Shown: positions 27,601-47,329, counted from the first letter of the stretch. The stretch: DNA of 64,000 nucleotides from Octopus sinensis (GCF_006345805.1 NC_042997.1:136772001-136836000), one strand, 5' to 3'. The notes: generated by a model from the letters alone, not told the origin. A program made the numbers and translations.

Positions 27601-28585
27601 CAGAACACTCATGGTGTCATTCATGCATGACGATTTATTCATCCAGTCGAGCATAGCTATCTCGTTTCTTCCCAGCATTCATACACTCTGCAATTAGTGT
27701 ATATATCTCACTTCTATACAAAACTTCACTTTGCATACAACCATCATATAATCTACTCCACTCTTAAAGAACTTTGTTGCTTACTGCAATAATAAATAGC
27801 TCCCTGAGCTTTCGCCTCTTCCATTACATTCTGATTATTGTTTCAACTGCTACTTAAGGTTACCCAAGTAACAAGTTGTTAGCTAATTGTAGTACGGTTA
27901 AAAGATTGCATTCATGCATATTATTTATGTCAGCTTTTCCTGAGATCCATTCCATATTACCTGCAAGCCTTTTATTTGTGTCATGAAACAGTAAAATCCA
28001 AGGAAAGTGATAGCATCATACTGTATTATATTAACAGATGAAATATTTATGATTCTCTCCAACTTTTGGGGGAGACTATTCGACTGTCTGAAATCAAATT
28101 TATTATTCACTCCTACATTTCAGGCCCATCTTGGAAGTCATCAATGGCTTTTCAACACCTTCACTGATGTTGAGAAAGCTCCTGCTGTCTGTCTACGCCA
28201 TGATGTTGATGGATTAGTGTGGCAGTTAGGTGATGATGACAGCTTTGACTTGGCTACACAACCATGGCGACATGTAGCAACATTCAACGCATTTGGTTAT
28301 GTTCAAGCTTCAAAACAACAAAAGAAATTTTCAACTTGTCCACCTGACTTCTCTTATGTAATCATCAGCGATTGTTCGAAACATTGTTACATATATCGTC
28401 AACCATTAGCCATTACTTCATCAATTAGAAACCGTAAGACTGGACATCAAGTAACAGCTGTTGCTAAGCAGCAAGTACTCTCTTTGGAAGCAGCAGAAAA
28501 TATTATGGGTGTCCAGGCAACTAATCATTATCTTTTTATTTTAACACCAACCAAACTTCTAGCTGTCAATATGGAATTACATTAA
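10486..28585 (+). CDS. NUDCD1: NudC domain-containing protein 1 (604 aa, 9 coding exons)
   Basis: Exons 10486-10606, 13123-13289, 14039-14245, 14654-14849, 19463-19651, 23430-23634, 24961-25102, 27212-27337 and 28124-28585 are all GT-AG and phase-compatible, totalling 1815 nt. Motifs LLNPNFDGYKLSLEPLP, YTWMQ (CS domain), CLRHDVDGLVW, HVATFNAFGYVQASK and VAKQQVLSLE match NUDCD1. Confidence 0.95.
12050..13000 (+). mobile_element. Degenerate RTE-like LINE ORF2 fragments
   Basis: Remnants EEVKIAIKQI and LPYQVLSSAL..YKDQLKHAM, with many stops. Confidence 0.5.
15130..16460 (+). mobile_element. Degenerate Penelope-like element (RT thumb and GIY-YIG region)
   Basis: DNIIPFTKQIRTNIVKLFCKVVSKHFSEKNKYHKIINSQKFRVSF resembles the PLE post-RT motif. 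Downstream STSLSKLIWSIK and RCELCVEE resemble the PLE endonuclease. Confidence 0.65.
16500..16952 (+). mobile_element. SINE with (GAT)n tail and internal 4x26-bp repeat
   Basis: Conserved 3' part ggcgttaggaagggcatccagctgtagaaac..catgctagcatgga..gatgatgatg. Unit gtaaaaagcactatccgacYYgtggc repeats at 16560-16663. Confidence 0.8.
17550..18920 (+). mobile_element. Helitron-like element with nested SINE (about 18590-18870)
   Basis: Ends cccgagcaaggccagg...CTAG|T and has a (TG)n near its 5' part. The 5' boundary is uncertain. Confidence 0.4.
19675..20180 (-). mobile_element. SINE of the (GAT)n-tail family
   Basis: Reverse complement of the same family as 16500-16952. Confidence 0.8.
20590..20624 (+). 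ncRNA. Minimal type I hammerhead-like motif in a Penelope-like pLTR fragment
   Basis: gttt-CCGACGA-A-GAG(ctcca)CTC-GAA-ACGT-T-aaac: stem I, core with a U4C change, stem II and palindromic stem III. Confidence 0.5.
21601..23379 (-). mobile_element. Defective Tc1/mariner (maT/DD37D-like) transposon with nested SINE (about 21633-22220)
   Basis: TIRs CAGGGTGCACAAGATATTTGAGGA at 21601 and its inverse ending at 23379, with TA on the left flank. Transposase fragments include an HTH, FFSNEK (catalytic D to N), FQ*DSA and WPSNSQDLNPLDYYMW. Confidence 0.88.
24237..24288 (+). ncRNA. Degenerate hammerhead-like motif
   Basis: aaacatct-CTGATGA-gaacc(taataa)ggttt-GAAA-actgaTC-aaggatgttt. Stem III is defective. 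Confidence 0.4.
25390..25975 (+). mobile_element. SINE of the (GAT)n-tail family with expanded ~60-bp internal repeats
   Basis: About five units of ggtggcacataaaaacaccatccgagcgtgg...tggcacctgtgtc followed by the canonical 3' tail. Confidence 0.8.
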
Positions 28586-29196
28586 ACTTAATTACCTTAC
28601 TGCTCTTTTCCAATTAAACTAATGAAATATTGGCTCTGAGTCTCTTTTTCTTTCTTTTGGTTATTCATACCTTGAATTGTCTAATATACCACAACCCCAC
28701 ACATTTGAGGGGTCTTGTGAGTTATGTGGTGGGAAGATTCTATGAAGAAAGCAACCAGTACAATGCAAAGGGGTTGGTCCTTGAACAAGCACCCAACTGC
28801 CAAAGCAGAAACTGGAGCTCAAGCAATCCTGTCTCTGTCAAACTGCCCAAAGCATGGAAGACAAGCATTAAATGAAGTACAATGCAAGACAAAAATTTAA
28901 TTTACAAATCCTATGCGTGAAATTATTTCAAGTATATTTATTGCATATTATTTACACTCATATTTGACTTATGATCACAAAGCTTTTTATTTTGATGTAA
29001 TAAAAAAATTTGTTTGAATATATAATACATACAAGGTCCTGTGAAAATAATGAAAAGGCTTAGTAACCATAATTTAAATATCATACAATGTGCAATACAA
29101 TAAATATAATTGAAATAATTGCACAAAGAATATTGTGGGTCAAATACGAAGATGAACACAAACCAAGTATTATATATTTAAGCTTTATTTTTCCAT

Positions 29197-32100
29197 TTAT
29201 TTTTCTTTGACTTGGAGACCTAAAAAAAATAAATTAAATAGTACATTAGTAATCAGCCACATTAAAATTTGTTACAAAGATGTTACAAATTTCATAGTAT
29301 GCAAAATTAAATCAAAATGGTTTTGATATACAACAAATGCAAATCTGGATAAAGATTTTTACAATAAACACTCCAGAATAATCACATAAGTCCCTAACAC
29401 TTGTATCATAGTCCTAATAGAATATTATAGATGTCCAGTTGAGATTTAAGGACAATGCAATATTATAATAATCATGAATATGGATGGATTTCCATAAATT
29501 ATGTAACTCTAGCATTTTTACTACAGAAGTACAAGTCCATGTAAAAAACATTGAATGAACTTAGTACATAGGAAAGCAAAGAATACTAAATAGTAATGAT
29601 TATTCAATGTATTTTCCTCTTTTAATGAACTCTTGCTCCCTAAGACTAGTAACAGGGACATGGTTGCTATTAAACTACAGAAGAAGAAGAAACATGCACA
29701 AAGGGTTAATTCCAGAGTGGGTGATTACTATGGCAAAGAGGTGGATATGTTTAGTGCAGTTTGGAGAGAGAGGAGGAGATACAAATGGATTTGAAAAGTG
29801 ACATGAGCTTAGCTTGGTCCAAAACCGGTCATTGTAAGTAGAAAACACAAAAACAAGGAAAGAGCACACAACAGACCAGAAATAGGGAGTCTAAGACGTC
29901 TATTTTTAATAGAAGCACAGTCCCAGATGTTGAGACAATAGGCTTTATAACTATTATCTGTTCCTGAAGAAGGTCAATCTTTGTGATTATAGTCTTTATT
30001 GAGGCAATTGGGTATTTAAGGTTAGAGTAAAATGAAAGCTAACTCATCAGCACTGACACTTTAGGCAAATATGTTGCTATGTAAGGAGGAAAATGAGTAA
30101 GACAAACTGCTTATGTTGCAGGTTAATGGGCAACCTATTAAAGAGATAGGTAGAACCCAGGGGTAAACAGTTTAGCTTGAAGATTTACATGACAAACAAA
30201 AAAGAATATTTTGCTAATGTCCTATTTTAACAGTTTTCAAATTTCTCACGAGCAAGTGGTACTACTGAATGACAATGAACAGTTCAAGCCGGCCTATTCC
30301 CAAAGGCAATCCAGTCACATCTTCCCTTTCTAGGACCAGATTATCCAGTATCCTGTATTTGTTGGGACAACAGGGTATGAGGGAAATCTGGCAGTTGTTT
30401 CTTGTAAATCAAGCAACTACATACAAGTTGTCATTTTTGTTAGGAAATAAGTTAATTTTTTGGCTCAAAAAGCAAAAAGCAAGGCCATGTGTACAGAGTT
30501 CAGGCCATTTCTGGTCAAGTGAGACTTTGAACCGAGCAGTCGTCGGCATCTTCACTCTCGTCCGGCAGCTTATTCCACAGATCTGTGGCCCGGATGGAGA
30601 AAGCCCGACCCCAATCTACTATGTTTACATCATCTCTAGAGATTGTATTCTTCCAACTAAACCACTCAACATTGAAACATAAGCACAGACTAAATCTGAG
30701 ACAAACAGAGAGTTACTAATTGTCAATGAACAAAAACTTAACTAGTATATAATATAAAATTAGGCATGATAAAAGCTCTTCTACTGAAGCAAGAAATTAA
30801 GCATATTTAATTTAAAAGAACAAACAAAATCCAAGTCAGGCAAAGCTTTCCGTGCACTGTGTCATAAGACACTCAAACAAGAGGTGTCAAAGCTTAATCA
30901 TCACACAAGGACAAATAGTTGCAGAGTCTCAAAGAATCATATCTTTTGGTTGGACACCTATCCAAGGCATTTATGAAAGTGGGGACTCTGCTAAGTGATT
31001 TTGGTTTAACTAGCTAACACATTAGGATTACAACTTAACTCTTACTGCAGTTCTAACAGAACAATGTGTGCCAGTGGAAACAGAGCTAAACAGATAATTA
31101 TGATAACTATTGCAAAACATTAACAGTTATAAATACGAAGTCATACTAGGGTATAAATAAATATCACAAACATTACTACACACTAAGCATTCTGAAGAAG
31201 GTTAAGATGAACTATACAGCTTCATGATAGTAATAATTCCAAATGCTATGTATCAAGATCTTTTAATCTAAATCAATAAAATTGCATTAATGTTGTAAAT
31301 TAACTCTCAGTACAGAGATTACCTTAAAAAGATGACCCAGCTAATTTTAATTCTAAGTAGTGAACATTTGATATTTCTGAGAAAAAAACACCACTCACAA
31401 ACATAGGTGGCAGGCTCATAAAAGATACAAGTGCTTGTGTAATTTTACATTTTTGTAAGCCTGCATATAACAGTTCATTGTACTAATTGAGTCCATCAAC
31501 GCAAACTTACTCTTAACTCAAAAGAGAATAAACAAATATCCAAGTCAGTCAAAGCTTCCCGTGCATTGTGTCATAAGACACTCAAACAAGAGGTGTCAAA
31601 GCTTAATCATCACACAAGGACAAATAGTTGCAGAGTCTCAAAGAATCATATCTTTTGGTTGGACACCTATCCAAGGCATTTATGAAAGTGGGGACTCTGC
31701 TAAGTGATTTTGGTTTAACTAGCTAACACATTAGGATTACAACTTAACTCTTACTGCAGTTCTAACAGAAAAATGTATGGCCAGTGGAAACAGAGCTAAA
31801 CAGATAATTAAGATAACTATTGCAAAACATTAACAGTTATAAATACGAAGTCATACTAGGGTGTAAATAAATAACACAAACATTACTACACACTAAGCAT
31901 TCTGAAGAAGGTTAAGATGAACTATACAGCTTCATGATAGTAATAATTCCAAATGCTATGTATCAAGATCTTTTAATCTAAATCAATAAAATTGCATTAA
32001 TGTTGTAAATTAACTCTCAGTACAGAGATTACCTTAAAAAGATGACCCAGCTAATTTTAATTCTAAGTAGTGAACATTTGATATTTCTGAGAAAAAAACA

Positions 32101-35100
32101 CCACTCACAAACATAGGTGGCAGGCTCATAAAAGATACAAGTGCTTGTGTAATTTTACATTTTTGTAAGCCTGCATATAACAGTTCATTGTACTAATTGA
32201 GTCCATCAACGCAAACTTACTCTTAACTCAAAAGAGAATAAACAAATATCCAAGTCAGTCAAAGCTTCCCGTGCATTGTGTCATAAGACACTCAAACAAG
32301 AGGTGTCAAAGCTTAATCATCACACAAGGACAAATAGTTGCAGAGTCTCAAAGAATCATATCTTTTGGTTGGACACCTATCCAAGGCATTTATGAAAGTG
32401 GGGACTCTGCTAAGTGATTTTGGTTTAACTAGCTAACACATTAGGATTACAACTTAACTCTTACTGCAGTTCTAACAGAAAAATGTATGGCCAGTGGAAA
32501 CAGAGCTAAACAGATAATTAAGATAACTATTGCAAAACATTAACAGTTATAAATACGAAGTCATACTAGGGTGTAAATAAATAACACAAACATTACTACA
32601 CACTAAGCATTCTGAAGAAGGTTAAGATGAACTATACAGCTTCATGATAGTAATAATTCCAAATGCTATGTATCAAGATCTTTTAATCTAAATCAATAAA
32701 ATTGTATTAATGTTGTAAATTAACTCTCAGTACAGAGATTACCTTAAAAAGATGACCCAGCTAATTTTAATTCTAAGTAGTGAACATTTGATATTTCTGA
32801 GAAAAAAACACCACTCACAAACATAGATGGCAGGCTCATAAAAGATACAAGTGCTTGTGTAATTTTACATTTTTGTAAGCCTACATATAACAGTTCATTG
32901 TACTAATTGAGTCCATCAACGCAAACTTACTCTTAACTCAAAAGAGAATAAACAAATATCCAAGTCAGTCAAAGCTTCCCGTGCATTGTGTCATAAGACA
33001 CTCAAACAAGAGGTGTCAAAGCTTGATCATCATACAAGGACAATTTATACAAAGTTTTGAAATTTCAAGAATACCAACCCAGCCATACAAAAGTGTTCAC
33101 ATTCAAAATCTCATAACAAATGATTTCAACTCCAACAATGCCCACCAGGCTATACCAGTACATAAAACAAGACAGTTCTCAAAATACTGATTATATAGAA
33201 AATTAGTTGAGAGAAATGAAATCAAAGCTAACTGCACAGTATTGTCAAGAGACTAAAAGCAAACTGTCTAAATCTTGATTACACAAGAATTGTTCAAGTC
33301 CCTCAAATTCTAATGTAATGTTGCATTTTAATAAACCTGTATATATTTAACAATCTATCAGCAGAACTCAATTCAGCTTAAACCTTCCTATAATCACAAT
33401 TACTCAAGCATCCATATTTAATTCAAAATCAAACATGAATGACATCTTAAAATTTACACTGTCAACAGCATAACACACCTATATGTAAAGGTGGATATTT
33501 TACAAAAACCCTCCAAAATACTGATTATATAAAAAAATTTATTTAAAGCATAAGCAGTCTACTCATGAAAAATAGCCAGAAAAGGATTACAGATAAATCC
33601 AAGTCAGTCAAAGCTTTCCGTGCATTGTGCCAGAAGACACTCAAACAAGAGGTGTCAAAGCTTGATCATCACACAAGGACAATATTTACAGAAATTTATG
33701 TATAACCCTGCATATATATCAGACAACATATATTTCAAGAAGTTGACATGGCTGTAGTTGTTGACCAATATCATGTGACAATTTAATACAGTAAGTAATA
33801 GTGACAACAGAGGGTAGAGAAGGTTAGCTGAGAAATGGACGAAATATTCAAGTCAGGACATGCAATAGAATAATTAAGATGAAATCATTATCATCATCGT
33901 TTAAGGTCCGCTTTCCATGCTAGCATGGGTTGGACGATTTTGACTGAGGGCTGGCGAACCAGATGGCTGCATCAGGCTCAAATCTTGATTTGGCAGAGTT
34001 TCTACAGCTGGATGCCCTTCCTAATGCCAACCACTCCGAGAGTGTAGTGGGTGCTTTTTATGTGCCACCAGCACGGGGGCCAGTCAGACAGTACTGGCAA
34101 CAACCTCGCTCGAATCCTTTTACACATGCCCCCAGCACAAGTTAAATGAAACTCAACATTTATCTCCGCATACACCACACCAAGAAGACGTACTCCAACT
34201 ACTCTATAATGAGTAGCTGTGTAGCTTCCCTACAGCAAGAAATCTGCTCTGGTCCCTTCTCTCTCACTTTCACCCCTCATTCTATAGCATAAAACCCTAC
34301 TCAGTCAAACAAGATCTTAGTGTTGCAGGCATCATGGTAGCATCCCTTAATACTGGTTCCACAAGCAAGTGCAGGCTGTAAAACAGTTGGCATTAGGAAG
34401 GATATCCAACCATAGAAACCATGCTAAAGCAATGGAGCACAATCTCGTCTTTGAACATGTCATATAACACAACCAATGATAGCTTGGAACATGGACATTA
34501 AATGGTATGTGTGTGTATGTATGCATACAAAAGAATTGTCTATATATAATTACACATTCATCACTACCAGTTAGGGTAAAGCAGTTAAACTGACATGATG
34601 CCATTAGCAGTTAATAATAAACCCATATCAGTCAAAAGTTATGATCACAGTCACCGTTAGAGGCTGACTAACATAATACATGCAACATCATGTACAGGTT
34701 TATAATAGGTGTAAAGTTGCAGCTATTTCATTTGTTAACATCTTGAAAATCCCAACATATAATGATTAAAATCCTTAGAACACCAATGTTCCAAGTTATT
34801 TTTTCCATAAACAGCAACAGTATTACTCCTTTAGCAGTTAAACTGACCAAATCTGGCCCAAATATTCTTCCAGACCAAGCAAGTCTGGCATCTCACACCT
34901 AACCTACAATATCATTATAAAAATAAAGAACCACTTCATAGAAATTTTCCAACTATAAGACAATGCAGGAGTCAAAACAATAAGACAAAATAACCATTAC
35001 ATTTAACAGAGTAATCTAAATGCTACAGGGTTAAAGATGGCATTAATATGATGCTGTTAGGAAAGACATCCAACCTTGGAAACCTGATACTCACAAAATT

Positions 35101-38100
35101 AAAGCTGACTACAGGTAAACTATCAAGCAAAAGAAAATTGATTACAATATGAATAGCAATATTACAAACCTGGTGGTAAAGATTGCTTTAATTTGTCAGC
35201 CTTTTCTCTGTCATGTATAACCAGTGTATACAAGAAGCGGCTACAACGAACTTTGAATTTAACATTATCCCGATTCTTCTTAATTTTTACGGCTGGAAAA
35301 GGAAAATGATTCAGGTAAATCTCAATGTACAATTTCTAATCACTGATGTAAATACATGCGTAAAGAAAATGCAGTATAAATTGTTGCAAAGCATTCATAT
35401 GAATACATAATTTGCCACTCAACTTTTAATTGCGGCTGTAAGCAGTTAACTCGAATCTTTTCCTTTTGATGGACGGAATTTTCTAGTTAACTAAACAATT
35501 TGAAACTTTGTATACTGGTAGAATGTGTCAAAAGAAAACATTATTGTAAACAAAATTGTAATTTGTAAGTTTAACGTAGTTTAATTCGAAGAATTTTAAC
35601 CAATGAAATGTCAGCATTTGAGCTCAAATCATTTGCTGCGTCTAAAAACACACACACACGTCTTATTCATCCTTATCTCTTCTGTCTTCTATATGTGCTA
35701 GAAATAACAGCTATATCTCTTAAATCAATGAATTTCGTCGCCCAATATTAACGATATTTTTTGAATATTTTCTTTTATTTTTTTTTACCGAAAAGGCTTC
35801 TCCCATGGTTTTGAAGGGCCAGAAACAACAAAAACAAAACAATAATATGCCTAAAGCAGTCTAGAGTTTGCGCGTGGAGTGTGAGTCGTATTGTAAAAAT
35901 TTGCGAAATATTTTTTCATAAAAGGATGCCCCAGCTTGTCGGAGGCTGTGATATAAATTGGGAAAAAAAATCCTCGACACCAGTGCGTAATTGGTACTTA
36001 ATTTATCGACCCCGAAACAATGAAACATTGACCCCCGCCCATTCTGGCTTATTTACCTTTTGTGTAAATTTGTTGCAGCAAGGGGCAAAACACAGAGGGG
36101 ACAAAAGTATTAAGTCGATTCTATCGACACCCGTGCGAACACACGAACGTGTATGTATGTTTGTGTGCGTATGTGTGTATGTATATCTCCATTTGTATGT
36201 GTGTGTACGCTTATATATTAATTACTGTGCTTGTGCAAATGTATATGCATGTGTTTGAGAGAGAGAGAGAGAGAGTGTGTGGCAGTGTGTATGTATCTGA
36301 ATGTGTGTGTGTGTGTGTGTATGCGGCATGCGTCTATGTTTCTTTATCAATATCGATAACGCAGCAAATGATTTGAGCTCAAATGCTGAGATTTCATTGG
36401 TTAAAATTCGAAGAATTAAACTACGTTAAACTTACAAATTACAATTTTGTTTACAATAATGTTTTCTTTTGACACATTTTATCAGTATACGAACTTTCAA
36501 ATTTTTTAGTTAACTAGAAAATTCCGTCCATCAAAAGGGAAAAGATCGTTAACTCTAAACCTGTGTCAGTTCAAAATTGTACACAAAGAAAATTAACATA
36601 AAAAGTTTTACACTAACAACTATTTTACATTGTGTACTAGGTATATTTTATCTTGGGATTTAATACAGAGTGTCCTGTCCTCATCATCATTTAATGTCCA
36701 ACCTTTCAACCCTACACTATCCATTCATTGGCCAATGACTTTATGGCATGTACCGAGTGTATTTTATCATGGCACAAGCACTAAAGACTGAGCAAAAGAG
36801 ATCAAGAGTACTCTGTCACTCACTAAGTTAAAAGATTCGGCAATCGTTTTGTCTCAGAAATGCTATTCACGATTTGTCATCCAGTCGTTACTTTCCATGA
36901 AAAGTTTTTATTTATTTACTTCTGACATGTCCAAGTGGAAGAGGAAGCAAATGGGTGTACGTGTGCATTGTTTTAAGTATTTGTATTCACTATAAATTTT
37001 GCATACACAAATGAAGTAGGTAAGAACGAATCCTAGCCACACACACACAAAAACGCATATAACTTGCACATTACAAAATACGATACAGTTTTTGTTATGC
37101 GTGTGTGAGTAGGCAGCATTAATGAAGATGTTACATGTTAATTTAATGTTAAACTTATCTTTCTTAATGCATATCGAATTATACATAAATATATACAAGA
37201 TTTACACAGATACGAGTCAGAACTTGTGATCTGCCTGCCTCTTCGACATGTTGACAATACGTGCTTTCAAATCCTGCTTTCTGATTAGATAAAAATTTTT
37301 CATGGAAAGTAACAAAGATAATGGCATTTCTGAGACTCAAAAAATTGATTTCCAAGGAAACTCACTTCTTTACATTGCATTATACTTTATGCACAAGTCT
37401 CAAATACACTGTCCTTTACTCAGAGAGATACCCTTCATTACCAATAAAAGTGATAATTCTTTGAGCTTTCCACACTGGTGACTATAACGTAAATATCCAA
37501 TAGATAAAATATAAATTAGCCTTAAAAAAATGACTATTTGTATGAAGCTAATGAACGGAAACATTAACAGTTAACCCGCATCAGTCAAAAGTTATGATCA
37601 CAGTCATTCTTAAAGAGTGACTAACATAATACATGCAACATCATGTACAGGTTTGTAACTGTAAAGAAAACCTCAAAACTCACACAAATTTCTCACTTTG
37701 GTTTATCATACTTTCAGAAAACCCACCTCACTGCTAACAAGGCTAAGAAACAAATACAGCTTTATAAAGGTCAGCTAGGGAAAGGTCTCTGCAAAGTTAA
37801 CTTGATGGCATGACAAAAGACCATCAAGATGAACCAAAGTCCTTTCAACATTACTGGAAATACTATTGAATATATCTATAAAAGCAATACAGAGTTACAA
37901 ACAAATAGTGATAGAAAAACAGTGAAGCTGTCGACTAATAAAATTTTGGGGGATAATGCAGTTTCATACCTCTCCTTGAGAAACTGATATTAAACTATGT
38001 ATACCAGTATTTACTACATATGATGCCTATATAAAACAATGTAATATACTCACATTTTGCATCTTTCCTTCTCGCAGTCAACAAAAATTCCTTTATTTCT

Positions 38101-41100
38101 GATATTTGTCGTGGCTGTAACATAAAATCAAATAGAAGTTGATGAAAATTTCACTAAAATGACATTTTAAAATTATAAGGATTTTCATATCACTTCAGAA
38201 AACAAATTTACCTTCCCCAGCATATTATACAGTAAAAGGAATCAATTTGGATCCTTTCAAATATTTACAAGTGTCCATTCAGTTGTGCATGCATATCTGA
38301 TTTTTATTAATTACTTCCAAAAACTTCTTTTTCTCTTGAGGCAGCCAATTTAACAATAAGCTTTTTAAACAATTTTGAAAACAAATGACAATAATGCAAC
38401 TAATAATTTCCAAATGACATTTTTCATATACTAATATGGAGGACTTTTGGCCTATGTATTATCCTCTTATATTCTGGAACATTAGAAAATTAAGCACAAG
38501 GAAAACGATAATCTGTAACTATAAAAGGGTTTGTGTGTGTGTGTGTGCGAGTGTATGTTCCTTATGCATTCCAAAACAGAGCTGCTGATTTTGATGTAAT
38601 GGGTATTCAAAAGATTCAGTAAGCTTTTGGCTACGAACTAAACTATTTTCATTCACATATTTGCATTACAAAAATTTAACATTATCATTTTTCTTTTAGT
38701 CACGACATTTTACATCACCACCATAATGACAATTTCTATACAAGTGTTTGCACGTTTGTTACCGACGTTAGGCCAATGACTAACAAGTATGTGTGTGTGA
38801 TGGTGTGTTTGTCAGTATACATTTTCCTGACACACAGAGGAACGGAGATAGGCTTCAGGTGTGCGTGTACGCGTGTGTGCCTCCAACAGTGAAATGCACC
38901 GATATTGAAAGTTTACTTGCAGCCTGGACTTCAAAGAATGTTCACTTTCAAGTACTACCAACATGAAGATATGGCTGATTTAACACCACTCACAATACTC
39001 GCAAATATATTCTGGTTAGTATAACAAATTCGGAAACTTGGCAAAGTAGAAAGCCTCAGCAGCTCTTTCAATATAATTACAGAAATTTTATTCCACTCCT
39101 AACCAGTTTCAAGATATGACTTCTATTCCTACCAACTGATGTTAAGACTATTATAGCACAGGGCTTGAAATTTCGAGAGAGGGGACCAGTCGATTTACCA
39201 ACCCCGAAAGGATGAAAGACAAAATTGATCGTGGCAGCATTTGAACTCAGAACATAAAGACAGGCGAAATACTGCTTAAGCATTTTGCACTGACATGCAA
39301 ACGATTCTGCCAGCTCACCAGCTTCCAGAACAATTAAATCAATTACACATGTCAAACTTTATTCTCATTTACATATTTTCTACATTATCCCAATAACCAA
39401 CTATAGTTATTTCAAATACACTTCTCTACAACGACCAGGTGTCATTACAAAATAAAAATAGTTTCAATTTTAATTTGAACCAAAATTCCAATGTGTTGCA
39501 TTACAAGAGTGACGATGTGTGAATAATGAAAGTAATGTTTCTCCGAAATAGTCACATGTATATTGAATGGAACTGGATGGTCACACCCCCACCCAAAATG
39601 ATCTTTCCGATTTTTTTTCCCCACACCAGATTCCTATGTTTTCAATGACAGAGATTCCAAAGAAAAAAAAACGCCTTCAAAATTTTTTTAGATCTACATG
39701 GAAAAATACGTATTCTCTTGCTTTTTTCAATATTCAATGAAAAGGGGGAATATGTTGTTACCATCAACATTAAAACTTGAGTAACTTGATCGATCTGTCA
39801 TTGAATCAGGATTTTATTTTAATTTCATTTGATACAAACTTTTGCTATCATTTATATGGAGAATTGCAATCGTGGCATATAAAGATAACTTATTTTAATA
39901 GAAAGTTTATGAGTAGATTTCTATAAATGTTTTTCTTGCACATCCACCATTCCTACCCATACGGAAACAGACTAAACATCGTTTAAAATTTGTCCTCCCC
40001 ATATTTTTCCACATAGATTGAAAAAAAAAATTGGGGTGGGGGGTAATTAATTTTGAAGGCAGTTTTTCTCCGTCATCGAAAACATAGGAATCTGGTGAAA
40101 ACAATAGGTGGGGGACTCCTCCAGTACCACCAAAATAACCTCGACAACTAGGTTGAGTCGCACAATTTTGAGATCATTTTCAGGCAATATTTTGATTTGC
40201 TTCTAGTGTACCACTTTTGTCCGATGTTTCACGTGTAAAATTCTACTCAGGCAAACAATTATGAAAATGTACACATAAATATGTACTAAAATAAGCCACA
40301 ACCAAAATAATTGCATTAAAAGACATCCATTTTTCTATAGGTTATGAGGAAATACATCCTCACTCACTCTCTCACACACAAAAAAGATGTATGCATATGT
40401 ATTTATGGGCAAAGATCAAGAATACGCACTCTCGGTGTTTAGGGTTACGCCAAAAACGGGTCGTGTGCGTATTCTTTACCTCCGCCTATTTACGTTTAGG
40501 GTTGAGGTTAGGGCAACATAAAAAAGTGAAAAATGAAATTGAAGGGGAGACAAAAAAATTTAAAGAAACAATAATTTGCGGGAAATGGGGGGAGGGATAT
40601 GGGAGGAAGTCTTTTCATCAAATGCTAATGCTGCCAAGGGCCCTTCGAAAAAATTTCAAGTTTTTGATGGGTTTTTTTTTCTCTCCAATGCAAAAACATT
40701 GTTGAGCAGAAAAATTACCAAAACCATCTCATTTAAGCAAGATCTTAATTTTTATTTGTAAATGGTTTCGATTATTTCAATTGGTTACACATGGACAGAA
40801 CAACATTGTTTCTCTACTATCAAGTTCGTAAACAGAAGTACTACAATATTCGAAAAAGTCTTGAAAAACTACCTCGATTAACTATTTCCTCAAATTCCGG
40901 ATGCAAGAAAAAAGTTTGCCAAAGATACTCGTTAAATGTAAACAGAAGAGATAGTGAAGAAAGCGCCACGTGACATTATGACGACTAAACAAGTTAACAG
41001 CATGAGGCTATCATGAAAGCACTAATTTAATCGAGTCACATATGAATTTTCGTCTCAGTGCAAATAATTGTTATGAATTAACTAAATCAGACTATAATAA

Positions 41101-41708
41101 AAATCATTCCTATAACGATCCAAAAAGTAGATGGATTAAGGGTTCGCATTTCCGATTTGTCCTTAGAACACGTGGGTTTTTTTTTTGTTAAGCCAGATGT
41201 ACAAATTCTGAGATCGCTTTAGAGAAACAAATCGCTAATATTCCAGACTTAATGAAAAGACTGGGGGGGGGGATATTTGTTATAAATGTTGTAGACTTGG
41301 TTTTAAGTTCTGCCAATGTCGGAATTCTGATAGCTCTACGAAATTTACTCTGGCTAAAATAATACGGAAGAAGGCGACAATATTCAACTCGGCTGGTTTT
41401 CTTTCCCCCACCGATGGCTAAACTATATATTCAATACTCTTGAATATATACACAGCAAAATACAACATTCAATTTGAAACCTTTTAAAATAAAATATCAC
41501 TATTTCTAGTCTTTCAAAATTTTTTTTTACTGATATTAGCACGAAATATTAACTAATATTGAGTTCTATTATTCTATGCTGCATTTGAACTTACAATTCT
41601 TTCAGTTCACCTGTATCCTAATCACATGCATGCAGTATTTAATACATATCTATAAAAATTAGTCTATAAATCTGAACAGAAAATTGAACAAGTCATAATA
41701 CTCACCAT
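29197..41708 (-). CDS. RPL38: 60S ribosomal protein L38 (eL38), 69 aa
   Basis: Minus-strand coding exons 41706-41708 (ATG only, end of the 18-nt exon 41706-41723), 38054-38114, 35170-35292 and 29197-29219 are all GT-AG. They give [75 protein letters not shown] lies at 29184-29189 (-). The ORF track misses this gene. Confidence 0.96.
30495..30637 (-). ncRNA. Long (143-nt) C/D-box snoRNA/scaRNA-like RNA in RPL38 intron 3
   Basis: Minus strand: agag-ATGATGT (C box variant) ... CTGA-actct, with an AGAG/CTCT terminal stem. The GC-rich interior folds into a long hairpin (gtcgg/ccgac, ttctc/gagag, tccgg/ccgga, ccacag/ctgtgg). It is sense to the host and stands out from AT-rich flanks. Confidence 0.65.
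30830..30912 (-). ncRNA. C/D snoRNA, LSU rRNA guide (snR48-like site), copy 1
   Basis: Minus strand has C box GTGATGA, guide TGACACCTCTTGT followed by D' TTGA, and D box CTGA. The guide is complementary to conserved LSU GCAAGAGGUGUCA. Confidence 0.8.
31539..31621 (-). ncRNA. C/D snoRNA, LSU rRNA guide, copy 2 (chimeric)
   Basis: Same boxes and guide as copy 1; lies inside the tandem array. Confidence 0.8.
32249..32331 (-). ncRNA. C/D snoRNA, LSU rRNA guide, copy 3 (chimeric)
   Basis: Same sequence as copy 2. Confidence 0.8.
32959..33041 (-). ncRNA. C/D snoRNA, LSU rRNA guide, copy 4
   Basis: C box ATGATGA, same guide, D box CTGA; marks the right boundary of the array. Confidence 0.8.
33598..33680 (-). 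ncRNA. C/D snoRNA, LSU rRNA guide, copy 5 (dispersed)
   Basis: Boxes and guide are conserved while the flanks are unrelated to the array unit, as expected for a selected snoRNA paralog. Confidence 0.82.
33890..34140 (-). mobile_element. SINE fragment of the (GAT)n-tail family
   Basis: catcatcgtttaaggtccgctttccatgctagcatggg..ctggatgcccttcctaatgccaacc. Confidence 0.75.
34620..34700 (-). ncRNA. U45/SNORD45-like C/D snoRNA (18S guide), copy A
   Basis: Minus strand: aacctgtac ATGATGT TGCATGTATTA T GTTA .. GTGATCA (C') .. CTGA tatgggtt, with an 8-bp terminal stem. The guide is complementary to 18S UAAUACAUGC, and the layout resembles vertebrate U45 (from memory). Confidence 0.78.
35453..36547. 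mobile_element. GGATC-family MITE (long TIRs, 8-bp TSD)
   Basis: Inverted repeats of about 190 bp and TSD gttaactc at 35445-35452 and 36548-36555. The internal segment is shared with 52286-52971 and 61740-62620. Confidence 0.85.
37573..37653 (-). ncRNA. U45/SNORD45-like C/D snoRNA, copy B (RPL38 intron 2)
   Basis: Boxes and guide are identical to copy A. Only the central hairpin differs, and it stays paired. Confidence 0.78.
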
Positions 41709-41851
41709 TTTGAATGTTTAGAGCTGAAAATAAAATAAAACGTCAATTAATTTCAACAATATATTGAAATTACATTTTTAAATATTCATGTGCATATTTT
41801 TTCAAGTTTCAACAACTTAAAAGGTCTCGTCGGAAAAATCGAGAAAAATTT

Positions 41852-41862
41852 GACAGGGAAAG
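41852..41862 (-). promoter_or_regulatory. Probable RPL38 TSS with 5' terminal oligopyrimidine (TOP/TCT) tract
   Basis: Minus strand reads cgCTTTCCCTGTC about 155 nt upstream of the ATG. Ribosomal protein genes typically start at such tracts. The exon-1 donor could not be fixed. Confidence 0.55.
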
Positions 41863-42453
41863 CGTTTCCATAACGTTTTAAATTGCTTTTGCTTGTTTTC
41901 AAGTAAATAATATAAAAACGAAAATCTTAAGCCAACATAAAGTGATAAATAAACGACATATTGAAAAGCAAAATTTTTAAACGTGATAAATCAGTTTAAC
42001 CTCATTTGGATGTTGAAGATATAAAGGGATAGCAAAAAATGAGTCTCGACCAGGGGTTCTAAGAATCGTTGTACAACAAATCAAGATCAACATAAAACAA
42101 CAAATGTAATCATTTCTATAATGTTGATACTCATCCTAATCTAAATTGCCAAAATTTATAAAATAAAACTTTATACGTGTCACAGATGAAAAGAGATTTA
42201 TAAGACAAACTTACTGAACAACCTAATGGTTGCCTTGGCGTGTTTCGTAAAGGGAGATAATTATTTTCAGCAGGCGAAAAAAAAATTATAAGCGGAAGTA
42301 GCTATTCCAAAGCATCATGGTACAAATAGCTAGGAAAAATACGTTATTGAATTTAATGATTAATTGTTGTATTCACCTAGAATACCTGTTACCTGTCTCT
42401 TACTTAGAAATGATTTATATATATATATATATTTATGATTATTTACATGCAGG

Positions 42454-43059
42454 TTGCATTGCGGTGACACTCCCTTCGTCGACTGTCGTTTGAACATTAC
42501 AATGATTTCGGAACTGCCCGACAGTGTTGTTCCCTCTGAAAATTTATTCCAGTCGAGCCAACGCAGAATCTTAATTGCTCAGCCTGCTAACAATAACAAC
42601 TCAAAACGTTATATTTTGAAAAGGCGAACATGTATGATAATGTTGTGGGACCTTCTCTGTCGTTGTAGCAGGCTCCTCGACTCCACAGGCCTCCATGACC
42701 TTTCTTGCCGCCTGAATGCTGGTCGCTTCGCGCATCATACGGAGTTGAACCTGATACTCAAGAGGAGCTTGGCCTGGGCAAACATCCCCTCCATCTTGGA
42801 ACCATCTGAATTGTCTAGATGTGATGGGAAGAGATCTGACGGCCTTACTCTGTGCCCCTGGTCGCAAGGCAGATGCCTTGTCTGGGATGTCACAGTTAGC
42901 GACTCCTTTGTTTCTTCCCACATCCTGGATGCTGTGGTCAGAGTGAAATCCAAAGCTTCTGTGGCCGAGCGGAACAAAATCCTGAAATACCGCGATCTGT
43001 CGGCCAACTACATTTTCCATCCTGTGGCATTCAAGATGTTTGGGGGGTCGGACCACTAA
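42454..43059 (+). mobile_element. CRE-like non-LTR retrotransposon fragment (restriction-like endonuclease domain)
   Basis: HDLSCRLNAGRFAHHTELN..EPSELSRCDGKRSDGLTLCPWSQGRCLVWDVT..AERNKILKY matches the CCHC plus PD-(D/E)xK RLE pattern. It is truncated. Confidence 0.8.
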
Positions 43060-46110: not shown

Positions 46111-47329
46111 CTAACTCACCTAAAGGCCATGTTTTGCAGATTCCACTTGGTATACGGTATAAGTAAGCAACATAAACAGGATTCGGTAAATGATTGATGA
46201 CGTTGGCAAAGAACTGACCATTCAGATTTCTGGTAGAAATAGGTTGTCATCAACATCAATTTTGGACGCCCTTTTTCTTTGTCAAACCATTGCCAGTATA
46301 TAGAATCGTTTGTCTGCAAACCACTAGTGGTCACAGCTCAGGCAAGACCGATAGATGCCGAATCTACACCACTCAACATCAACAACGATGACAATTGTCA
46401 TGACATAGCTTAAACCAGCTAGCTGCCAGAAGCTACACTTCTCACAGTGTTGACACACAACATGATATATAAACTGCTTAACTTGGTGCAAAATTTCTTT
46501 TCTGTTGTTTGTAGTAACACACATTGTTTTGTCAGTGATAAATATGTAGTAGATCTTGCATGCATGAAGTGGATTCAATCAACCATAGCCAAATTTAAAT
46601 TAACACTGCAACAGAACTTTTCCCACAGCGGAACAATGGCTTTTCTCTGACAGCAGTTTTATATTTTCCAGACTGCGTTTAGCTAGGCCGAAATAATGTC
46701 TTCACCACTTGACCCTTTCTAACCTCTTCTAATTCACCAAAAGCTAGAATAGAGATAACAAGACCACCAACTAAATCTATTGATCTCAATGATATATCTA
46801 TCCTACTGGATAGTTATAAAAGCAAGAACACCCCACGCAAAAATCAGTCAGTGACGACTCAACGAGTCCAGTCACATGGTGATGACTCAACCTAGTAGTC
46901 ACTTGGCGACAACTGAACGAGGTGGCTTGTAATGACTCAATTAGTTAGGGAACGGACTGCTAGAATCATGAGTACAAGGAATGCAGCTACTAAAGACAAT
47001 GGTCAGCGAGAGAAATAAAGTTTACTGTCAGCAACTGTGAGACAACACCCTACAACTCTCAATAAGCTCTAATTCTGCTCTCATACAACATCATTCTATC
47101 TCTCTCCGCGATTACTACTAAACAATGCAGAGAACACAAACACAAACTTTACTTCACATGTTTTTGGATTTGTCATAACCTGCCCATCGAGGCAAGGTAT
47201 TGTAACGAAACGGTAAATAAATATTTCCTTAAAAACTTCATGCATTGTTCATCTTTCACATATTACAACTTGCCATTATAACAACAAATTTTTATTGTCA
47301 CAACTGCTGACTCCGACATTTCATATTCT

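Follow-up and report, generated by a model that had tools for sequence, protein, structure and literature searches.

Two families of box C/D snoRNA units in the last two introns of octopus RPL38 probably form an intronic gene cluster

Does the RPL38 gene of Octopus sinensis harbor a genuine cluster of box C/D small nucleolar RNA (snoRNA) genes in its introns, and if so, how could several such RNAs be freed from a single intron? The question arises from a 64,000-nucleotide (nt) stretch of the genome (GCF_006345805.1, NC_042997.1:136772001-136836000; hereafter the window), in which an initial annotation had placed eight C/D candidates of three families, with at least seven in one RPL38 intron. 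Our analysis indicates that the locus is, in all likelihood, an intronic snoRNA gene cluster made up of two families of C/D methylation guides, both in the sense orientation, in the last two introns of RPL38.

Seven well-supported box C/D units were identified, all on the minus strand of the window, which is the sense strand of RPL38 (Table 1). Family A is represented by A1 in the penultimate intron and A2 in the last, and family B by five copies, all in the last, of which four (B2-B5) lie in a tandem array. The introns concerned span 38053-35293 (one supported snoRNA) and 35169-29220 (six); we number them 3 and 4 rather than 2 and 3 because a likely 5' untranslated region (5'UTR) exon at 42256-42214 is counted. 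The figure of at least seven in one intron must therefore be lowered to six in the last intron, with one more in the preceding intron. In the predicted gene structure, these six sense units are bounded by the GT at 35169 and by the AG at 29220, although cryptic exons could lie among them, and sets of units likewise lie within single introns in Argonauta hians, the oyster Crassostrea virginica and the limpet Patella caerulea. Both a C box (AUGAUGU in family A, GUGAUGA or AUGAUGA in family B) and a D box (CUGA) were present in 7 of 7 window copies and 8 of 8 Argonauta copies. Every unit further combines a terminal stem with a hairpin between D' and C'. Exact core motifs recurred in the window five times for family B and twice for the 28-nt core of family A, where shuffled sequences predict zero for both, and an nhmmer search found no further copies of either family elsewhere in the window. 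The likeness between A1 and A2 is bounded exactly by the 5' and 3' arms of the terminal stem, beyond which the flanks are unalignable; the flanks of B1 are also unalignable with those of the copies in the tandem array. This 710-base-pair (bp) array was missed by Tandem Repeats Finder, whose period limit was 500, and was recovered with a repeat search.

Motif recurrence has to be read against the background of chance matches. A naive C/D scan, defined by a C box, a D box 35-160 nt downstream and a flanking stem of at least 4 bp, matched the window's plus strand 9 times and its minus strand 10 times. At about 10 matches per strand per 64 kb, motif matches alone therefore weigh little. Among these matches, stems of 8-9 bp were confined to family A.

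The cephalopod compared with the window was Argonauta hians, at its RPL38 locus (L001, GCA_054771915.1); a search by way of the neighboring gene returned single-exon open reading frames with no RPL38 beside them, and a second protein cluster contained no additional cephalopod. When positions 28000-42500 of the window were aligned to this locus by blastn, the only matches were the exons, a promoter block, the last exon of the neighboring gene, pieces of a short interspersed element (SINE), and four A-type and four B-type units. The naive C/D scan of the Argonauta gene returned only A- and B-type units, recovering 7 of the 8. The spacers between units were not conserved in the blastn comparison, which argues that constraint acts on the snoRNAs and not on the intervening RNA. 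Within each species, paralogs were 86-99% identical in family A and 89-100% identical in family B, versus 65-80% and 72-80%, respectively, between species. That paralogs are closer to each other than orthologs indicates repeated local duplication or concerted evolution. Two near-identical A-type units with stems of 12-13 bp (L001 10904-10984 and 11249-11330) flank the same small coding exon in Argonauta, where one precedes its 3' splice site by about 100 nt and the other follows its 5' splice site by about 30 nt; A1 and A2 flank the same exon in the window at larger distances.

Base pairing is maintained in these units even where their sequences vary. Across the terminal stem and the base of the internal hairpin of family A, 92% of cells in the alignment were paired, versus 31-43% when the partners were slid by 1-3 columns, and three pairs showed changes on both sides (for example, A-U to G-C). 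RNAalifold independently recovered the terminal stem of this family, which measures 8-9 bp in the window and 12-13 bp, with a bulge, in two of the Argonauta copies. The hairpin between the D' and C' boxes varies in sequence and keeps its complementarity: AGUCA/UGACU in the window, AGUUUCU/AGAAACU and GUUCCU/AGGAAC in two Argonauta copies, and AGUUACCUU/AAGGUGACU in the other two. In family B, the Argonauta stems comprise 6-7 perfect pairs or nine positions with one U-U mismatch. The stems of B-type units in more distant species are unrelated in sequence and still complementary (11 bp in Haliotis, 7-9 in Patella, 10 in Helobdella, 6-7 in Capitella and 4-6 in Crassostrea). Internal boxes were placed using the hairpin together with the aligned sequences of Haliotis, whose D' is CUGA, and of Crassostrea, whose D' is GUGA and C' AUGAGU.

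The locus had been proposed to be a cephalopod processing unit. However, multicopy B-type arrays were also found in the RPL38 genes of the oyster, the limpet, the abalone Haliotis rubra and the annelid Capitella teleta, so the arrangement is not specific to cephalopods. These B-type snoRNAs have the same C box and guide and lie on the RPL38 sense strand; in 7 of 7 species, all copies are sense. The copies occupy different introns in different lineages. The RPL38 loci of Saccoglossus, Branchiostoma, Tachypleus and Bugula yielded no B-type unit. Since the B guide resides in RPL38 of both molluscs and annelids, usually in multiple copies, the pairing of guide and host predates the mollusc/annelid split. 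The four Capitella units occupy L131 1350-2410, 90-460 nt apart, just upstream of the annotated RPL38 start codon, and could belong either to a 5'UTR intron or to an independent polycistronic unit. In Patella, the intron that holds the B-type copies also contains a second C/D family with stems of 6-9 bp (L126 3443-3517 and 16139-16209), whose D guide AAUAAUUACCA pairs with 18S UGGUAAUU, adjoining the human Am159 site.

To predict targets, guides were compared with ribosomal RNA (rRNA), and the methylated position was assigned by rule as the partner of the fifth nucleotide upstream of the box. The D' guides were invariant across paralogs and species in both families. The family B guide UUUGACACCUCUUGU, followed by UUGA, pairs with 28S UU(U/C)AAGCAAGAGGUGUCAGA over a total of 20 bp, of which 15 are anchored at the box; only 1-2 of 200 shuffled guides scored equally anywhere in the ribosomal DNA (rDNA). 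The nucleotide five positions upstream of D' is the pairing partner of the G in CAAG*AGG (asterisk after the target nucleotide). The same position precedes a canonical CUGA in Haliotis and GUGA in Crassostrea, and these homologous D' boxes confirm the register. In an Rfam scan with a 116-nt query, the best match to family B was plant snoR1 (RF00345, clan CL00066), which shares the guide core UGACACCUCUUGU and its register relative to D'. The family B guide agrees with that of this clan in specifying the 28S G of CAAG*AGGUGUC (At Gm2781 in plants, Sc Gm2788 in yeast). Family B is thus predicted to direct 2'-O-methylation of the 28S G in GCAAG*AGGUGUCAGA, a position served by snoR1 in plants and by snR48 in yeast. 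Hoeppner and Poole (PMC3511168) list AtsnoR1 Gm2781 and yeast snR48 Gm2788 as equivalents within this clan and give no human entry. Relative to snoR1 and snR48 (RF00471), the D' guide core, the register and the predicted G are alike, whereas the 3' half and the D guide are unrelated; unlike family B, neither snR48 nor snoR1 is hosted by RPL38. By our own count, the human SNORD60 site lies 2-3 nt further 3' than the family B site.

The family A guide UGCAUGUAUUA forms 12-13 bp with 18S CUAAUACAUGC(A/G), and 0-20 of 200 shuffled guides did equally well. Its D' box is GUUA (GUGA in one Argonauta copy), and the fifth nucleotide upstream pairs with the U of CUAAU*ACAUGC. Human 18S rRNA is methylated at Am159, Am166, Um172 and Cm174, with Um172 assigned to SNORD45A/B (PMC11550049). 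The spacing of these human sites (A159, A166, U172, C174) fits GGUAAUUCUAGAGCUAAUACAUGC in one register only, in a numbering that is our own count. Family A would accordingly be expected to direct methylation of the equivalent of 18S U172, the human SNORD45A/B site. SNORD45A/B and family A address the same 18S stretch and the same U; the second SNORD45 guide (Am159) is absent in family A. The host of human SNORD45 is RABGGTB, whereas that of family A is RPL38. SNORD45 was absent among Rfam matches up to E=10, even in a 106-nt search of family A.

Guides adjoining the D box behaved differently from the D' guides, differing between copies and species and matching rRNA no better than shuffled guides. 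One candidate, the pairing of the B2-B4 D guide with 28S CCGAA*GUUUCCC (yeast A807 by our own count), was rejected: 62 of 200 shuffles scored equally, and the pairing was not found in B1, B5 or Argonauta. The D-box guides are probably orphan or lineage-specific. In the B copies, one partly palindromic motif occurs twice, right after the C box and again right before the D box (e.g., 33665-33655 and 33612-33602). The window has it as AAGCUUUGAC, Argonauta as (U)AUGC(A/U); these two stretches might pair with each other and have changed together between species, and they may give the nonconserved "D guide" of family B a structural role. Taking motif recurrence, conservation in Argonauta, stems and guides together, the initial claim that C/D snoRNAs lie sense to RPL38 within its introns is borne out, and the proposed comparison of RPL38 across species, here with Argonauta and gastropods, found the C box and D' guide kept. 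These sequence comparisons indicate that the sense C/D cluster is real and under selection.

Several observations weigh against this reading. The Rfam search that had been suggested as a check returned zero matches at gathering thresholds across the whole window, and the snoR1 match to family B, at 17.9 bits versus a gathering score of 49, falls short of CL00066 membership by score. In the window, the family B stem is weak, with 4-5 bp, two U-U mismatches and a single G-C pair. The octopod internal boxes are degenerate (D' GUUA in family A and UUGA in family B; C' UGAUCA and AUGCAC, respectively). The rRNA used for target prediction came from complete metazoan rDNA units in metagenome contigs (L102, L030), which are not cephalopod. 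Because B2-B5 are repeats of 98-99% identity, their number could be polymorphic or affected by assembly. Finally, the units are known here from sequence alone, and we infer the processing route in its entirety.

The host gene is as the initial annotation had it. Splicing the minus strand at 41706-41704 (ATG), 38114-38054, 35292-35170 and 29219-29197 yields a 69-amino-acid eL38 that is up to 93% identical to database eL38 proteins with PF01781 and, start methionine excepted, the same as the annotated Argonauta hians eL38. All exon borders are GT-AG, in an exon structure that is predicted in the window and annotated in Argonauta. Upstream, positions 42365-42133 form the sole block aligning with Argonauta (L001 8817-9046; blastn), and 42256-42214 within it is a probable noncoding first exon (5'UTR) of RPL38.

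Table 1. Coordinates of RPL38 exons, snoRNA units and the tandem array in the window, and of related units in other species. Locations without a locus name are window positions; names beginning with L are RPL38 loci of other species.
Feature	Location	Strand	Remarks
Family A copy A1	37573..37653	-	C AUGAUGU, D' guide UGCAUGUAUUA, D' GUUA, hairpin AGUCA/UGACU, C' GUGAUCA, D CUGA, 8-bp terminal stem
Family A copy A2	34619..34701	-	9-bp terminal stem; 468 nt downstream of the last intron's 5' splice site
Family B copy B1	33597..33682	-	C GUGAUGA, D' guide UUUGACACCUCUUGU, D' UUGA, hairpin GUGUC/GGCAC, D CUGA
Family B copy B2	32958..33043	-	Motif match, array unit
Family B copy B3	32248..32333	-	Sequence identical to B4
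Family B copy B4	31538..31623	-	Sequence identical to B3
Family B copy B5 (last)	30829..30914	-	~1.6 kb upstream of 3' splice site
Tandem array, ~3.1 units of 709-710 bp	30826..33058	-	Units 98-99% identical; one B snoRNA and ~620 nt of spacer each
Probable noncoding first exon of RPL38	42214..42256	-	CTCCCTTTAC...TTCAG, then gtaagt; sequence, within aligned upstream block
RPL38 ATG exon	41704..41723	-	ATG at 41706-41704; gtgagt directly after
RPL38 coding exon	38054..38114	-	Kept in Argonauta, L001 10001-10060
RPL38 coding exon (...LPPG)	35170..35292	-	Kept in Argonauta, L001 11091-11213
Last RPL38 exon, coding part (LQVKEK, stop TAA)	29197..29219	-	Kept in Argonauta, L001 16499-16522
Argonauta A-type units	L001 10904-10984, 11249-11330, 12064-12146, 12842-12924	sense	blastn
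Argonauta B-type units	L001 14171-14257, 14752-14837, 14976-15057, 15452-15540	sense	blastn
Haliotis rubra B-type	L125		2 copies; upstream of first mapped coding exon
Patella caerulea B-type	L126		3 copies; a single 14-kb intron holds them all, along with two units of another C/D family
Crassostrea virginica B-type	L130		3 copies; all in one 1.8-kb intron between coding exons
Capitella teleta B-type	L131		4 copies; tandem, upstream of annotated ATG; UUGA and GUGUC/GACAC hairpin as in octopus
Helobdella robusta (leech) B-type	L127		1 copy; 10-bp stem

How might the copies be released? With several genes in one intron, exonucleases trimming from the ends cannot alone free the inner copies. In the route we propose, Snu13, Nop56, Nop58 and fibrillarin would assemble on each unit during transcription of RPL38. 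A distance of about 70 nt to the 3' splice site favors splicing-coupled C/D assembly, and none of the window units lies at the usual distance: A1 sits 400 nt away from the 5' and 2,280 nt away from the 3' splice site, and B5 is about 1,600 nt from its own. The remoteness of A1 is due in part to an insertion at 35458-36542, an element missing from the much shorter Argonauta intron. Terminal stems (8-13 bp in family A, 7-11 bp in the B-type units of other species) may free assembly from this distance. According to work reportedly from the Steitz laboratory, long external stems make assembly of the small nucleolar ribonucleoprotein (snoRNP) position-independent, which agrees with what is seen in family A and in other species' B-type copies. 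The introns would then be spliced out and debranched, and exonucleases would trim them to the outermost particles. The spacers between particles would be cut by an endonuclease, or part of the output would stay as snoRNA-ended RNA. Tandem duplication would set copy number, so that each time the host is transcribed, a given guide would be produced more than once.

A broader proposal can be put forward tentatively, although we consider it doubtful: tandem arrays of a 28S guide would have been kept in RPL38 introns since before the mollusc/annelid split, so that there would be either an efficient intronic endonucleolytic pathway or routine production of stable snoRNA-ended RNAs, with copy number acting as dosage control. 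If this were true, copy number would uncouple snoRNA output from host mRNA output.

Among other accounts of the cluster, the one that survives best holds that one or a few copies per family are functional and that the rest are young duplicates or pseudogenes, transcribed and then degraded, with no special processing. We regard it as possible but not favored. The array copies, at 98-99% identity, are too young to display constraint, the closeness of paralogs relative to orthologs fits rapid birth and death of copies, and B5 carries three substitutions, one of them beside the D box. Moreover, in several species one copy keeps the usual spacing of 85-125 nt to a 3' splice site, with the others far off. 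However, B1 and A1/A2 are old, as their unalignable flanks attest, and yet have intact boxes, guide and stems; all five B copies in the window retain C and D boxes although none is at the usual distance from the 3' splice site; and from two to five intact copies with complementary stems were found in every sampled mollusc and annelid except the leech.

Less probable is that the multi-snoRNA intron mainly produces long noncoding RNAs that have snoRNAs at their ends (sno-lncRNAs), with exonucleases halting at the outermost snoRNPs and the ~620-nt spacers remaining stable, as at human SNORD116. No nuclear RNase III is known to separate intronic snoRNAs in animals, which counts for such an outcome. 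Stable lncRNAs with snoRNA ends have been documented from human introns holding two snoRNAs, the number stated to be needed for a mammalian sno-lncRNA (PMC5054931). The RPL38 intron, with six, has the structure required of the sno-lncRNAs of the human SNORD116 region (at least two snoRNAs per intron), but its spacers are unconserved between the window and Argonauta, placing constraint on the snoRNAs and not on the RNA between them. In addition, Drosophila intronic clusters are reported to give individual snoRNAs (Huang et al. 2004, 2005).

It is quite improbable that the units are transcribed from a promoter of their own, as a polycistronic precursor inside the gene in the manner of plant and yeast clusters. 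The B copies of Capitella, Haliotis and Helobdella lie upstream of the first annotated coding exon, where an intronic location is assumed, and would leave room for such transcription. Against it, every copy shares the orientation of RPL38 in all seven species, the copies of the window, Argonauta, Crassostrea and Patella lie between coding exons, and no conserved promoter-like block was detected upstream of the units by blastn against Argonauta. That families A and B are chance C/D-like motifs or transposable-element fragments is hardly tenable, despite the abundance of chance matches of C/D boxes with stems in the window: the cross-species data already refute it, with conservation confined to the units, covarying stems, invariant guides complementary to rRNA, the same host in two phyla and no other copies in the window.

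Several other candidates were rejected. Of the eight initial candidates in three families, seven units and two families stand; the third family, C (34290..34340, minus strand; AUGAUGC...CUGA), is unsupported and probably a chance motif. Only 44 nt long between the outer ends of its stem, it has just 4 bp in that stem, lacks C' and D' boxes, is present as a single copy with no Argonauta counterpart, and has a guide no better than shuffles (21-32 of 200). The naive match at 33904-33848, which overlaps an Rfam "snoZ247" match at 33901-33837, is the GATGA-rich tail of a dispersed SINE. Copies or fragments of this SINE (core GTTGGCATTAGGAAGGGCATCCAGC) occupy 33890-34100 and 34384-34428 and are also scattered across the Argonauta locus; its tail, GATGATGA, mimics a C box and so produces the near-match to snoZ247. 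A 145-nt candidate at 30638-30494 is not conserved in Argonauta, and 46993-47102 and 42261-42325 have no independent support, the latter falling in the block of promoter and exon 1. A permissive Rfam scan of 27-41 kb yielded only this SINE-tail match and microsatellite "miRNA" matches. Microsatellites of (CA)n/(GT)n and (CT)n at 36150-36340 account for spurious matches to mir-297 and mir-3149.

The sequence some 30 nt downstream of B2, B3 and B4 (~32910-32950, 32200-32240 and 31490-31530) combines a pyrimidine tract with an AG and then a consensus 5' splice site (TTCTCTTTTGAG TTAAGA GTAAGT), and could mark a hidden micro-exon. We dropped the motif as evidence for one, as it is absent after B1, B5 and the Argonauta copies; it is probably due to chance. 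The insertion at 35458-36542, in the intron that houses A1, resembles a DNA transposon: its terminal inverted repeats, 184 bp long and 95% complementary, are separated by 717 bp. Beyond RPL38, the plus strand carries the last exon of a convergent neighboring gene at 28007-28585, its end some 600 bp away from the RPL38 stop codon. The neighbor encodes, in Argonauta, a 601-amino-acid product with a CS domain (PF04969), and the exon DNA is 86% identical between the window and Argonauta.

Polycistronic snoRNA clusters of yeast and plants have their own promoters and a known endonuclease (Rnt1p in yeast), whereas the RPL38 precursor would be a spliced animal intron. What the RNase III clusters of yeast and plants share with this locus is several snoRNAs per precursor that need internal separation. 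Closer parallels are the intronic clusters of rice and Drosophila melanogaster described by Liang-Hu Qu's group (Huang et al. 2004, 2005), which are reported to have several sense snoRNAs per intron, with ribosomal protein genes as frequent hosts. Sense snoRNA genes in one protein-coding intron, often as tandem isoforms of one snoRNA, are common to those clusters and to RPL38. Since intronic clusters are already known in rice and Drosophila, the RPL38 locus is a further case of a known arrangement. It differs from the Drosophila clusters, which are reported as chiefly H/ACA, in being C/D, in occurring in Mollusca and Annelida, and in keeping the pairing of guide and host across two phyla. In chicken, two introns contain two identical snoRNAs each (PMC2770669). 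No description of this locus, of which the initial annotation likewise knew none, was found in the literature, nor was one found of RPL38 paired with a snoR1-like guide; cephalopod genome papers give only counts of snoRNAs from Rfam matches.

These results have consequences for the study of snoRNAs in cephalopods and beyond. Standard annotation misses these genes, which shows that cephalopod snoRNAs are poorly catalogued, and the locus supplies seed alignments for two families. One guide, directed at the snoR1/snR48 site that has no human counterpart in PMC3511168, is tied to one host even though its copies shift introns and turn over, making a case for studying host fidelity. With six units in one intron and none at the usual distance from the 3' splice site, octopus RPL38 offers a natural substrate for asking how inner snoRNAs are released, whether by an endonuclease, through hidden exons or as sno-lncRNAs.

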